Of a stretch of 64,000 nucleotides of DNA, positions 60,881-63,682 are shown in pieces. How positions within the stretch are numbered: the stretch's first letter is position 1; each line of letters starts with the position of its first letter. Location of the stretch: sequence record NC_031010.1. One strand, given 5' to 3'. The position numbers were made by a program, and so were the translations under genes. The notes below the pieces were generated by a model, which had not been told where the DNA came from, ran no database searches, and was given only the letters and a program-made list of their open reading frames with translations.

Positions 60881-61039
60881 CTCGGCCCCTAGTGGGACTA
60901 AGAATTGGTCACTTTTTAACCAACCGTTTGACCCTTTCAAAAAGCTTGCTGAAAAGCATTCTAAGCGTTTACAATCAAACCCGGTACATTCGGGTGGCTT
61001 AAGGGGAGAACGTTTACCACAGGGGCGTACAGTGCGTTT

Positions 61040-61510
61040 TAACGGGGGTTGGGGACGAAGTTTGCCGGGGGGATTTGGGAATCGCGAAATCGCCGGGGTG
61101 CGAAATCCCGTTTGGCCGACGCCGCCGCGCCGATCAAAAATACACTAGCGCTTGCGCGATTTAGGGGGATTTAAAATGGCTTAGCCTTGAGAGACGAAAT
61201 CTCTTGAGTCTCTCTGCTAAGTGTTTGTTTTCCTTGGAAATTCTATTTATCTAATTCTAAAAAATACTTATAAATCAATTACTTATTACCTCTTTAAAAA
61301 ATACTTTTAAAAACAACAAGTTACGATCCTAAGTGATCCCTTCTATATACGCGTGCGCGCACGCACGCCATTTCCTACAGGGATCTTTTTGTTTTATATA
61401 ATAAATATTATTTAATTATATTTATATAATTATAATAATAGATCATTATACCGCGCCCCCGCGCGTGCGTGATCTTTATTAAGAGATTTTATTTGGCAAG
61501 GGGTGATCGG
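61040..61510. other. Candidate replication origin or packaging-initiation region
   Basis: Non-coding; 49-nt pure A/T run (61392-61440) between GC-rich blocks; six GATC sites in 61325-61508; G-tracts and CGAAATC repeats upstream. Confidence 0.45.
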
Positions 61511-61559
61511 GGGGTGAAAACCCCCTGTCGAGTTTTTTACAGGGTTGCGTAGTATTCTA

Positions 61560-61885
61560 TGCAATTGCGATGTTCAGCCAAAACATCCAGAGAGACTTCC
61601 GCACCCAACCGACTGGTCATCGTGGGGTGCTTGCCGTAGGACTTGACCCCAGCCTCTGTCCGAGTTTGGCGGTGGGTGTCACAGCCCACCGAACTTTTCA
61701 AAACGCCTGAGTTATTACCTATGGCAAAACGCATTCGGTTTCACGAGCAATCGGGGAACGTAACCAGACTAGCCAGCCAGCTAGTAATCTTCGACCGGGC
61801 ACCGACCCAGCGAAGGCCCACACTCGGATTCAGGTTCGAGTGGCAGTACCAGTTGCTTGCCCCCTTACGCGGGGGCTCTTTTTCG
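61560..61885 (+). ncRNA. Putative structured non-coding RNA 1 (about 320 nt)
   Basis: Dense hairpins, a 10-bp long-range helix (61631-40/61718-27), a GCAA tetraloop; promoter-like motif upstream and intrinsic terminator at 61859-61883. Confidence 0.55.
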
Positions 61886-62895
61886 AATGCCTTCTGACGA
61901 GGACATTGGAAAACGGTGCAACACGACTTCGCCTACGGGCAGAGTTCAGGTTCCTGTCTTACCCACCGTCGCCGTTAAGCTGAGCGGCACGCGGTGGCGG
62001 TTTAGGGTTGCGGTCAATCCGCATTCTGAAATCTTGACGGGTACCGTGGCAGTCTTGGGAGTGAGCGAGGTCGGCGCGCAGATTACGACTGCGTTCGGCA
62101 CCTGCCAGCTGGTTGCACAGCTGCGATGGGTGGCTGGCCTGCTCCCCCAAGATGTGGCCAAGAGCATGGTGTGTCTTCTGAGGGGGAGGGCACCAGTCTG
62201 AAGATGGTCTAGGTTGATCCCCGAAAAGACGTAGCCTACGTCCTGACCAATCTTTTTTTTCTTTAGGCAAAACGTAGTGAGGCGCTATGTTTACCAAAGA
62301 GTATCTGGATTCTCTACCAAAGAGAATTCCCATTGAAGAGCGGTTAGCTTCGAAAACCAAGGTTACAGAATCTGGTTGTCATGAGTATGACGGCGTGAAG
62401 GACCGATGTGGGTACGGCCGATTTAAAATTGGCAAGCACTCTCTCGGTGCGCACAAGGTCAGTTATTTGACCCGCGTCGGTGACTACGACCAGAATCTCG
62501 AGTTGATGCACAGTTGCGATAATCCCGCCTGTATCAACGTCGACCATCTCACACCTGCTACTCACCAAGAGAACATGCAGGATTGTGTCGATAAGGGACG
62601 CCATACCTCCCAGCATCTTGACTCGCCGAGACAAGCAGCAATCGAATCAGGGATGGAGTTGTATTACGGCAGTGTCTGTGAGATTCACGGCTATGACCTT
62701 CGCTCCGTTAAGAACGGGGCCTGTGTCTTTTGTCGCGACGATTACAATGCCAAGAAACGAGAGCAGCGTAGAGTGGCTCGTGAGAGTGCCGCCTAGGGGC
62801 GGTAGGCTTGAAAAGGGGTGATCCTTTTATCTTGGCGGCTCGGAAAGACGAGAGGGGTGGGTGTCCACGCTGAGAAGCGTCGGCACCTAGCTGAT
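61886..62895 (+). ncRNA. Putative large structured RNA 2 with an embedded HNH ORF
   Basis: Multiple helices with UACG and GAGA tetraloops on both sides of the ORF; flanks 62233-62244 and 62795-62808 pair. Confidence 0.5.
62287..62796 (+). CDS. HNH endonuclease (HNH_3 type) with a C-terminal Cys/His zinc-binding motif
   Basis: C.E......GYG.F......AHKVSY.......LMHSCDNPACINVDHL..ATHQENMQD; C-terminal C..HG....NGAC..C. Confidence 0.85.
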   Translation: MFTKEYLDSLPKRIPIEERLASKTKVTESGCHEYDGVKDRCGYGRFKIGKHSLGAHKVSYLTRVGDYDQNLELMHSCDNPACINVDHLTPATHQENMQDCVDKGRHTSQHLDSPRQAAIESGMELYYGSVCEIHGYDLRSVKNGACVFCRDDYNAKKREQRRVARESAA

Positions 62896-62897
62896 AT

Positions 62898-62923
62898 TTT
62901 TACGGGTTAGTTCCTCCCTGTGT
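62898..62923 (+). promoter_or_regulatory. Putative promoter, class B
   Basis: TTTTAC 62898-62903, N16, GTGT 62920-62923. Confidence 0.5.
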
Positions 62924-62944
62924 ATAAAACTCAAGGAGCTAACC

Positions 62945-63682
62945 ATGATTAACCCAAACCTGCTTAATGTTCCGTTATCGCTGGCACAAGTGTTTGGACT
63001 GCTCGGCGTCCCGGCACAGCTGAAAAGCAAAGATTCATCAGTCCTCAAACAGCTCGATGAAGCGGTGTCCAAAGTCTATCTGGGCCATCACCATAGCCCA
63101 TCGCTGGCTGAACCTTCTCGCTGGCTGACCATTGCGGCGGGTGGTGCCGGAAAAGACGTGTGTATCGCCCAAGGTAAGGGCGACAAACGCAGCGATGTCG
63201 AAATCTACAATGCGCTGTTTGCTAGCGCGTTGACCAGCGTGATGCTTCGCATAGCGCGCGACAGTCCGATACATGAACCGCGTGCAGCACGTCCGTTGTG
63301 GGACTTTGTGCCAAAGCGTAATCCAGCTGAATGCGATATTGTGGTTGATGGTGAAGTTATGCCCATCGCCCCCTTCGTCGAATGGATTTGTTCGGTCGAC
63401 GACGAATACCACAACCAGTACGCAGCTCTCCTCGAGCGGGATTTTGAATCACTGCAGTTCATGCGCTTCCCGAACAACGCGGCGGTTGCAGTTGTCGGTA
63501 AACTCAATCCCAAAGCCGGCGGGTACTGTGTTCCAGTTTGCGTGACGTATTACGAAGGCGTCAACGGTACGCTCAAGGCGATTTACGAAGTCATCCGCGT
63601 TTACCACAAATCCACGACACGGACGAACACCTTCGACTACCTCACGTCAATTAACCCGAGCGTGGATGAGTCTGCCCGCTAA
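62945..63682 (+). CDS. Hypothetical protein
   Basis: AAGGAG RBS; 245 aa. Confidence 0.7.
   Translation: MINPNLLNVPLSLAQVFGLLGVPAQLKSKDSSVLKQLDEAVSKVYLGHHHSPSLAEPSRWLTIAAGGAGKDVCIAQGKGDKRSDVEIYNALFASALTSVMLRIARDSPIHEPRAARPLWDFVPKRNPAECDIVVDGEVMPIAPFVEWICSVDDEYHNQYAALLERDFESLQFMRFPNNAAVAVVGKLNPKAGGYCVPVCVTYYEGVNGTLKAIYEVIRVYHKSTTRTNTFDYLTSINPSVDESAR

Follow-up and report, generated by a model that had tools for sequence, protein, structure and literature searches.

The right end of the genome of Erwinia phage vB_EamM_Kwan (KX397369), a Wellingtonvirus related to Salmonella phage SPN3US, carries a large structured non-coding RNA into which a free-standing HNH gene has been inserted. The window analyzed here is the whole stretch of 64,000 nucleotides (nt); it ends where the record ends, a position in KX397369 equals the window position plus 182390, and the query region is 100% identical to the record. 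The RNA is absent from Rfam 15, and the HNH gene, an open reading frame (ORF) annotated in GenBank as gp291, is itself ordinary. Positions 61859-62195 plus 62830-62894 constitute the best-supported core; both belong to a single non-coding RNA of the plus strand that is conserved and strongly structured. The explanation that we favour as a whole, and regard as probable, is a plus-strand RNA reaching from approximately 61561 to 62894, with the HNH gene inserted into one of its variable linkers.

The plus strand of 61859-62195 folds with a minimum free energy (MFE) of -162.8 kcal/mol (z = -5.19), and none of 100 dinucleotide-shuffled sequences was as stable, while its reverse complement gave a z of only -1.82. 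The 3' piece (z = -2.5) folds as had been described in an earlier, sequence-only reading of this DNA, and the MFE structure of the full 1041-nt RNA retains the native helices of both the 5' and the 3' part. That reading had postulated an unclassified structured RNA at this place, and the fold statistics, the covariation and the absence of an Rfam match show that it is truly present. The elements of the core are the following.

61859-61876, plus strand: GC-rich hairpin T, found in the MFE fold and flagged as terminator-like, with a U-run on its 3' side.
61880-61913, plus strand: long hairpin P1, found in the MFE fold, with the U-run after hairpin T as its 5' strand.
61925-61946, plus strand: hairpin with a UNCG loop, found in the consensus fold and the MFE fold.
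61945-61951, plus strand: invariant UUCAGGU.
61953-58/62036-41, plus strand: helix P3, which encloses the hairpins 61963-61997 and 61999-62033, from the folds and from covariation across clades.
62047-50/62157-60, plus strand: helix P4 (UGGC/GCCA), in a fixed-register reading.
62052-59/62146-53, plus strand: helix P5, which closes a branched domain with GCGCAG/CUGCGU and CAGCUG/CAGCUG.
62171-62193, plus strand: hairpin GUGUCUUCU-GAGGG-GGAGGGCAC, the last native helix on the 5' side of the insertion, found in the consensus fold and the MFE fold.
62830-62894, plus strand: invariant 3' domain, with UCUUGGCGG, P9, AGGGG, P10 and GCUGA in that order.
62839-52, plus strand: P9, CUCG-GAAAGA-CGAG.
62858-65/62882-89, plus strand: P10, with an inner GNRA hairpin at 62867-80.

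All helices that had been proposed for the 5' half are present in their places, and most of them recur both in the single-sequence MFE structure and in the consensus fold of the Wellingtonvirus clade. The GCC/GGC stem at 61931-40 was found again, its UACG loop being UUCG in phage pEa_SNUABM_11. CCACCG/CGGUGG belongs to the MFE structure, and RNAalifold favours an adjacent register of the same hairpin; UGCGG/CCGCA and UCUUGGG/CCCAAGA are seen in the sequence as well as in the folds. An A-U pair of GCGCAG/CUGCGU has become G-C in SNUABM_11, and CAGCUG/CAGCUG has undergone three compensatory changes. The 3' helices CUCG/CGAG and ACGCU-GAGA-AGCGU, located inside GGGUGUC/GGCACCU, hold as well. The proposed ACCA..UGGU pairing does exist in the sequence, but it sits in a segment specific to Kwan, outside the conserved RNA. 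In the hairpin at 62171-62193 a U-G pair is replaced by C-G at the related loci L012 and L002, which is consistent with pairing.

It had also been claimed that the 5' region holds no credible ORF, and this is supported by 1- and 2-nt indels between homologues, despite mechanical ORFs and two annotated genes. GenBank lists gp289 (61537-61734, minus strand) and gp290 (61959-62150, minus strand) as "hypothetical protein" coding sequences on the strand opposite to the structured RNA. The stretch 61859-62194, which contains gp290, differs between homologues by such indels together with compensatory base-pair changes, and the records of related phages mostly have nothing annotated opposite the structured RNA at the position of gp289 and gp290. 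Judged from these comparisons, gp289 and gp290 are probably not genes.

Covariation was quantified separately for the two halves. For the 3' domain, 24 matches to a covariance model (R1) were aligned, 20 of them distinct. Among the distinct sequences 88.7% of the alignment cells fell into standard pairs, compared to 40-44% when the partners were slid by 1-3 columns, and 19 of the 28 pairs were changed on both sides. Not one of 500 shuffles matched the observed pairing, the doubly changed pairs and cells, or the covariation score. P10 had 10 of its 13 pairs compensated and a GNRA loop in every case, and P9 is invariant and therefore uninformative. R1 failed to shift the P7 hairpin of the L017 group into register and took P6 for P7 in L036, so that the counts for P7 are conservative.

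For the 5' half, P1, the base of P3, P4 and P5 were located in 14 distinct sequences by their fixed distances from invariant anchors, without a structure-fitted alignment. Here 89.5% of the cells were paired and 17 of 30 pairs were doubly changed, a result that none of 1000 shuffles reached. P1 in its fixed register was 84% paired, with 8 of 17 pairs doubly changed (14 sequences), and the base of P3 covaries between clades (CC/GG, CU/AG, UC/GG). P4 was 100% paired, with two of four pairs doubly changed (UGGC/GCCA, UGGU/ACCA, CGGU/ACCG), and P5 was 93% paired, with six of seven pairs doubly changed (both for 14-15 sequences); the variants of P5 are UCUUGGG/CCCAAGA, CGCCAGA/UCUGGCG and CCUCAGG/CCUGAGG, and CCUCUGG/CCAGAGG in a plasmid-borne clade. 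Within the Wellingtonvirus clade, RNAalifold found 117 pairs, 10 of them compensated, including GCGCAG/CUGCGU and CAGCUG/CAGCUG. The abundance of G-U pairs, together with tetraloops that are exclusively of the GNRA or UNCG type, points to the plus strand as the functional one, and to the RNA level.

Some further pairings were inspected by eye. The closing helices UUCAG/CUGAA and UUGGC/GCUGA are possible, but they are invariant or broken by the only variable position, which gives no support either way. A loop-loop pairing of CUAACAC with GUGUAG was rejected, since changes in the P7 loop are uncompensated. Pairing of UCUUGG with CCAAGA (62158-63) was rejected as well, being in conflict with the strongly covarying P4.

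The RNA could not be assigned to any known class. Rfam 15 gave nothing at gathering thresholds in the whole window, nothing relevant in 61000-63000 at permissive E values up to 10, and nothing relevant in five ORF-less alleles at E values up to 5. These negatives cover group I and group II introns, HEARO, GOLLD, ROOL, RNase P, tmRNA and 6S, and no known family thus appeared either with or without the ORF. ARAGORN found no tRNA or tmRNA within the RNA. No description of the RNA was found in the literature, in a comparison that did not extend to the viral RNA motif catalogue PMC10690425.

When a 1.5-kb query was used in blastn, the sole part that aligned to other genera was 62817-62895, with 78-87% identity in 47 records. 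These were phages of Seoulvirus, Erskinevirus and Machinavirus together with Proteus and Escherichia phages, and the DNA was always unannotated there. The related phages have a gene-free region of 1.3-2 kb in the same syntenic place, downstream of the homologues of gp287/gp288. Such regions, without conserved ORFs, are present in Kwan, pEa_SNUABM_11, SPN3US, phiEaH2, pEa_SNUABM_29 and pEa_SNUABM_9, and also in Asesino, Caitlin, ChrisDB, Proteus phage 7, metagenome contigs and two circular records of 222 kb. At the loci of SPN3US-like phages R1 scored 92-133 bits; the two plasmid records of 222 kb reached 73.6 bits.

When aligned, these regions share an order of elements. A GC-rich hairpin is followed by CUUUUUCGA, P1 that uses this U-run, and a hairpin with the loop CCUAACAC. 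Then come the invariant UUCAGGU, P3, and an invariant ACCGUGGCAG that leads into P4 and P5, which close a branched domain specific to each clade. Further hairpins precede a variable G-rich linker, with or without P8, and GGUGRUCC, and the unit ends with the invariant block AUCUUGGCGG-CUCG GAAAGA CGAG-AGGGG, the long GNRA-loop hairpin P10 and GCUGA.

The RNA is kept at all of approximately 25 distinct loci and is nowhere missing in its entirety, so that it is neither an intron nor itself a mobile element. A degenerate-pattern scan of IMG/VR returned nothing outside the known phage group, a scan of JGI metagenomes gave the same phage group plus two chance matches only, and a scan of 185,579 reference genomes gave no matches. 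The RNA is a syntenic, vertically inherited feature of the SPN3US-like nucleus-forming jumbo phages.

The two circular records are deposited as plasmids (L036, NZ_CP134650.1, Enterobacter ludwigii, 222,441 bp; L037, NZ_CP173450.1, E. coli strain 98232, 221,873 bp). Both show a gp287-like gene, an AT-rich island, the structured RNA and then a tRNA, and their copy of the RNA is more divergent and lacks the G-run and P8. From their gene order they look like genomes of SPN3US-related jumbo phages that were kept by, or co-assembled with, bacterial isolates.

The HNH gene sits in a segment that separates the two parts of the core in Kwan. Its features are these.

62196-62829, plus strand: segment of 634 nt specific to Kwan and Wellington, which carries the HNH gene and replaces the 21-nt linker CGGGGAGUGAGGUGAUCACUG of insert-free alleles.
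62202-62260, plus strand: at the 5' end of the insert, a branched hairpin and then U8, a possible intrinsic terminator.
62287-62796, plus strand: HNH homing-endonuclease ORF gp291 of 169 amino acids, apparently intact (Pfam, PHROG, tblastn).
62795-62829, plus strand: 3' flank after the stop codon, AGGGGCGGUAGGCUUGAAAAGGGGUGAUCCUUUUA, which R1 aligns to the native region of G-run, P8 and GGUGAUCC of Seoulvirus.

That ORF-less alleles might exist had been suggested as a check, and they were found in pEa_SNUABM_11 and in two lineages from IMG/VR or metagenomes, L020 and L012/L018, which are 98-99% and 91% identical to Kwan, respectively. In a blastn comparison, Kwan and L020 are 99.75% identical over 7.2 kb on the left side; the alignment breaks at 62195/62196 and resumes at 62829/62830, and the flanks within 1 kb are 99.4-100% identical. 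pEa_SNUABM_11 aligns over the whole 2.1-kb intergenic region with approximately 75-78% identity, without the approximately 600 nt holding the HNH gene. The segment occurs only in Kwan, Wellington and one metagenome contig (three of approximately 25 distinct loci), and the other clades are without HNH. The presence or absence of the ORF in near-identical alleles bears out the proposal that it invaded the RNA, and the invaded part is peripheral and of variable length: the linker with the G-run and P8 ranges from 21 nt to approximately 45 nt between clades, and L036 has neither G-run nor P8 hairpin. The insertion adjoins the 5' side of the most invariant 30-nt block of the family. These alignments show the HNH segment to be a recent, lineage-restricted arrival in the variable linker that joins the last helix of the 5' part to the invariant 3' domain.

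Judged by its sequence relatives, gp291 is an ordinary free-standing phage HNH homing endonuclease. It matches the HNH endonuclease families PHROG 1492, 1872, 6254 and 826 with E values from 1e-29 (PHROG 1492) to 3e-20, and tblastn picked up related genes in 1340 phage records, where their contexts are unrelated; outside the Kwan lineage the nearest of them is 46% identical and belongs to Klebsiella phages. The Kwan and Wellington copies of the segment differ at six nt, all of them in the ORF and all synonymous, and the ORF is intact in three genomes. An HNH catalytic domain in an intact ORF, and presence or absence of that ORF at a fixed site in otherwise near-identical genomes, are marks of a free-standing homing endonuclease gene (HEG), and gp291 shows both. 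Searches of gp291 revealed no RuvC or other feature of IscB and no sequence similarity to a solved structure; the earlier statement that the protein is not IscB is therefore correct, as HNH_3 is its only domain.

The local fold of the hairpin followed by U8 is unexceptional (z = -0.93). The Rfam model int-alpA (RF02996) reached 31.0 bits at 62202-62267, below its gathering threshold of 35.8 (E = 6e-4 in a 2-kb search), which may just reflect a hairpin plus a U-tract. Because no promoter-like motif lies between the hairpin at 62202-62260 and the HNH ORF, the gene is probably expressed by read-through. Both ends of the segment resemble native linkers of the family: the 3' end UAGGGGCGGUAGGCUUGAAAAGGGGUGAUCC resembles the G-run/P8/GGUGAUCC region of Seoulvirus (compared with CUUGGGGGAUAACUCCAAAGUGGGGUGAUCGG of L030 and L026), and for the 5' end AGUCUGAAGAUGGUCUAG GUUGAUCC the similar sequence is the same linker as it occurs in L012.

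It had further been noted that the flanks of the ORF can pair with each other. The pairing between AGCCUAC-GUCCU (62233-44) and 62795-808 is indeed found in the sequence as described, but it is absent from the MFE structure of the full-length 1041-nt RNA. It extends to a bipartite duplex of -42.6 kcal/mol, a value that is reached by 1.0% of shuffles and by 1.1% of genomic controls with the same geometry. The helix is uninformative for covariation, as the flanks of Wellington are identical to those of Kwan and the contig of the third carrier lacks the 5' part. As an RNA structure the helix is plausible. A likeness to the double T-loop around P12 of RNase P, also proposed, finds no support, since the supposed brackets CCCC-GAAAAG and UGAAAA-GGGG belong to the replaced segment that is specific to Kwan and show no conservation across the family; the RNase P models (RNaseP_bact_a/b) matched neither the region nor the ORF-less alleles at any threshold.

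The conserved structure extends further upstream than the core. The start at 61886 given by the sequence-only reading is too far downstream, as conserved structure begins at approximately 61561, and its size of about 460 nt stands as a lower bound, while the conserved unit plausibly covers approximately 61561 to 62894, or approximately 700 nt without the insert. RNAalifold on four sequences of the Wellingtonvirus clade gave 101 pairs in 61533-61886, 12 of them compensated. Three features frame the unit.

61536-61561, plus strand: bipartite promoter-like motif TTTAC(A/G)-N15-TATG upstream of the whole non-coding unit, with a putative RNA start near G61561.
61562-61858, plus strand: upstream conserved structured segment (RNAalifold, four sequences of the Wellingtonvirus clade).
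62899-62922, plus strand: promoter-like motif TTTACG-N15-TGTG between the RNA and gp292.

The bipartite motif TTTTTAC(A/G)-N15-T(A/G)TG-..AA occurs six times in the window, always on the plus strand (9743, 19068, 46326, 61536, 62899 and 63687), and one copy lies immediately upstream of gp293. The copies stand ahead of genes or of the RNA unit; the motif is conserved in related phages, and other clades likewise have it both before and after the RNA. In the clades of Wellingtonvirus, Seoulvirus and Erskinevirus the same motif is found 700-780 nt upstream of the 3' motif. It is a candidate for a phage-specific promoter class. The phiKZ late promoter has the form T(-3)ATG(+1) (PMC7598289), and by likeness to it the RNA may start near 61561. 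At its other end, a conserved terminator after P10 is missing in most clades, and 15-50 nt past GCUGA there begins a same-strand ORF, of a family that differs between clades. Lacking a conserved terminator of its own, the RNA is probably the 5' part of a longer rightward transcript or processed from one. At the Machinavirus-like loci L007, L017 and L029 the downstream ORF follows the RNA without an intervening promoter-like motif.

A motif UUCAGGUU is present twice in the RNA unit (61829-61836 and 61945-61952). One copy forms the loop of a covarying hairpin (61821-61842) and the other is the invariant block that precedes P3 in the whole family, which suggests a repeated recognition element.

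In the explanation that we favour, the RNA would be transcribed from its own phage-type promoter at approximately 61536-61561, and would either constitute the 5' portion of a longer rightward transcript or arise by processing of that portion. It would act as a putative binding platform through the invariant single-stranded blocks UUCAGGU, ACCGUGGCAG, UCUUGGCGG, AGGGG and GCUGA. The HNH protein would recognise and cut the insert-free RNA gene of co-infecting relatives at or near the invariant UCUUGGCGGCUCGGAAAGACGAGAGGGG block (UCUUGGCGGCUCGG), and repair would copy the HNH cassette into the cut allele. The cassette would be tolerated at a structurally dispensable site, where its paired ends might perhaps extrude the ORF, and it would be expressed by read-through from the promoter of the RNA.

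Several observations weigh against this explanation. The match of gp291 to Pfam HNH_3 (E = 2e-5, 24.6 bits) lies 0.2 bits below the cut-off of 24.8. The junction is a replacement with three copies of GGUKRUCC, rather than a clean insertion, and has no obvious target-site duplication. A gradient of co-conversion beside the insertion was not seen when Kwan was compared to L020; the mismatches instead cluster 500-800 nt downstream, in gp292. Two conserved terminator-like hairpins with U-runs (61672-61700 and 61859-61885) lie inside the unit, and together with the hairpin and U8 of the cassette (62202-62260) they could split it into separate RNAs; if transcription terminates there, the 5' and 3' domains of Kwan would never be on one molecule. 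Finally, no transcriptome or other expression data for these phages turned up in the literature searched, and the transcript is an inference, as are its ends and its stability.

The main rival is that the RNA is a cis-acting 5' leader which controls the downstream rightward genes by attenuation, antitermination, stability or translation and has no function of its own. The same-strand ORF that always follows shortly after GCUGA, the Machinavirus-like loci without a promoter-like motif before that ORF, the absence of a conserved terminator after P10 and the conserved terminator-like hairpins within the unit would all fit such a leader. We nevertheless regard it as unlikely, given that the family of the first gene downstream changes from clade to clade and that a promoter-like motif parts the RNA from that gene in most of them. 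The RNA also comprises 450 to approximately 700 nt, has multi-way junctions and contains a large number of invariant blocks that are unpaired, whereas known leaders are far smaller, and it tolerates in Kwan an insertion of 634 nt that includes a hairpin with U8. A conserved DNA-level element (a replication origin, a packaging site or a protein-binding array) would be in keeping with the AT-rich island at 61213-61462 directly upstream, its GC-rich flanks and its six GATC sites in 180 bp. That island is, however, separate from the structured part and upstream of it. The compensatory changes keep G-U pairs, which are A-C mismatches on the other strand, folding is strongly strand-asymmetric, and GNRA and UNCG loops are signatures of RNA, all of which makes an explanation at the DNA level very unlikely.

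HEGs are typically found in peripheral loops of group I introns, and both this placement and the pairing flanks of the ORF would suit a degenerate or novel self-splicing intron comprising the whole RNA. It is an explanation that we find barely tenable. The group I and group II models do not score even at E values up to 10, the flanks are non-coding on both sides and there are thus no exons, and every homologous locus retains the RNA, with only the 634-nt segment being polymorphic; the non-ORF part of that segment, 124 nt, is too small for an intron core. The view that no exons or canonical group I/II cores are present is thereby upheld, while the suggestion of an invaded intron loop is not. 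For a group II intron there is again no model match, and the only ORF is the 169-amino-acid HNH protein, where a reverse transcriptase would be expected. Equally improbable is an RNA-guided or RNA-assisted nuclease composed of the RNA and the HNH protein, i.e. a ribonucleoprotein (RNP) such as the earlier reading had offered as an alternative. IscB proteins have RuvC and HNH domains, measure approximately 400-500 amino acids and obligatorily co-occur with HEARO RNA. The present locus shares with IscB-omegaRNA an HNH protein gene beside a large structured RNA, and this adjacency in Kwan and Wellington, together with the complementarity of the ORF flanks, is the sole support for an RNP. In contrast, gp291 is a protein of 169 amino acids with HNH_3 only and without RuvC or the other IscB domains, the phage HNH genes related to it stand free in contexts that are unrelated, and neither HEARO nor the other Rfam models match. 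The RNA is conserved without HNH at approximately 22 of the approximately 25 distinct loci, in four genera, so that it is independent of the protein nearly everywhere, a distribution that is already close to refuting an RNP.

The favoured combination of a structured RNA and an inserted HEG has analogues among known systems. Free-standing HEGs of T-even phages include SegB in the tRNA gene cluster of T4 (PMC2330249; review PMC2988022) and the HNH gene mobE (PMC2790892). As with those, the Kwan gene is a small stand-alone endonuclease gene that is present or absent between near-identical genomes, lies in or next to conserved non-coding RNA genes and conserved sequence, and needs no intron. It differs from them in showing no co-conversion gradient, and from SegB in lying inside a single large structured RNA gene rather than between tRNA genes, in encoding an HNH_3 enzyme where SegB is of the GIY-YIG type, and in that its cleavage, target and homing are putative. 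In the HEGs of phage group I introns, such as T4 td/I-TevI and SPO1 I-HmuI (PMC3984707), the ORF likewise lies in a peripheral, tolerant part of a folded RNA, with flanks that can pair and extrude it, but the Kwan RNA has no group I core, exons or splicing context and is not itself the mobile unit. GOLLD and ROOL are large ornate RNAs (PMC5737381) that resemble the Kwan RNA in their several hundred nt, multi-stem junctions, association with phages or prophages and proximity to tRNA genes. Their Rfam models do not match it, and the Kwan-type RNA is confined to one lineage of enterobacterial jumbo phages, at a fixed syntenic position. The intervening sequences that fragment enterobacterial 23S rRNA are excised by RNase III from a stem formed by their flanks. 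By analogy only, they share with the Kwan segment a foreign insert in a structured RNA whose ends pair, which would allow a functional two-piece RNA.

To the left of the RNA is an origin-like island that is rich in AT and dense in GATC; to its right the rightward gene array starts, with its first genes and tRNAs. The AT-rich island (61213-61462), directly upstream of the RNA unit, is the only strongly AT-rich one in the window. Its GC content falls below 15% in 60-nt windows, and it is bracketed by the GC-rich blocks CGCGTGCGCGCACGCACGCC ... CGCGCCCCCGCGCGTGCGTG (flanks 61350-61369 and 61452-61471). The density of GATC, six sites in 180 bp, compares with 1.6 per kb overall, and GATCTTTTTGTTTT in this region looks like an oriC-type 13-mer. 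This architecture is kept in all related phages, and the island may be a replication origin or another DNA-level site.

On the other side of the RNA, a mosaic patch inside gp292 (63317-63617) has 66 mismatches in 300 nt relative to L020, compared to 0-4 per 100 nt elsewhere, and Wellington has a comparable patch at approximately 62917-63016 (33 mismatches). The patch suggests recombination within gp292. Searches of Pfam, NCBIfam, PHROGs and PDB sequences gave no function for the neighbouring proteins. The SPN3US gp1 family (L004 3623-4111) is the first gene 3' of the RNA in Seoulvirus and Erskinevirus, and it shows a faint likeness to models of proteasome beta/HslV-type peptidases that is far below the cut-offs (NCBIfam E = 9e-4 to 6e-3; Pfam Proteasome E = 0.07).

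Large, intricately folded RNAs are rare in bacteria and phages, and the known ones are ribozymes, RNP scaffolds or unexplained assemblies such as ROOL and GOLLD. We tentatively raise, as a more far-reaching and rather doubtful proposal, that the Kwan RNA represents a new class of large ornate RNAs (approximately 450-700 nt) which is a core component of SPN3US-like jumbo phages, acts in trans and still works in Kwan and Wellington despite the HEG. Candidate roles in trans would be those of a ribozyme, an RNA for assembly, packaging or replication, or a decoy for a host factor. In Kwan and Wellington the cassette, through its paired ends, would allow extrusion or excision of the ORF, and the RNA would then function in two pieces.

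If this proposal is true, gp291 would be the first free-standing HEG residing in a structured RNA gene that is neither an intron nor rRNA. We know of no exact precedent for a HEG inside a large non-intron structured RNA gene, SegB and the HEGs of intron loops being close analogues. The insertion is a natural experiment that marks a position where the RNA tolerates 634 extra nt, and its site points to the invariant 3' block as the likely target of the endonuclease, which bears on the competition between co-infecting jumbo phages. The RNA itself is conserved and covaries densely in four or more genera of nucleus-forming jumbo phages, among which is the genetic model SPN3US, and adjoins an origin-like island and a phage tRNA cluster, although in GenBank it is unannotated or mis-annotated as small hypothetical proteins. 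It thereby offers an experimentally tractable handle on the RNA biology of chimalliviruses.

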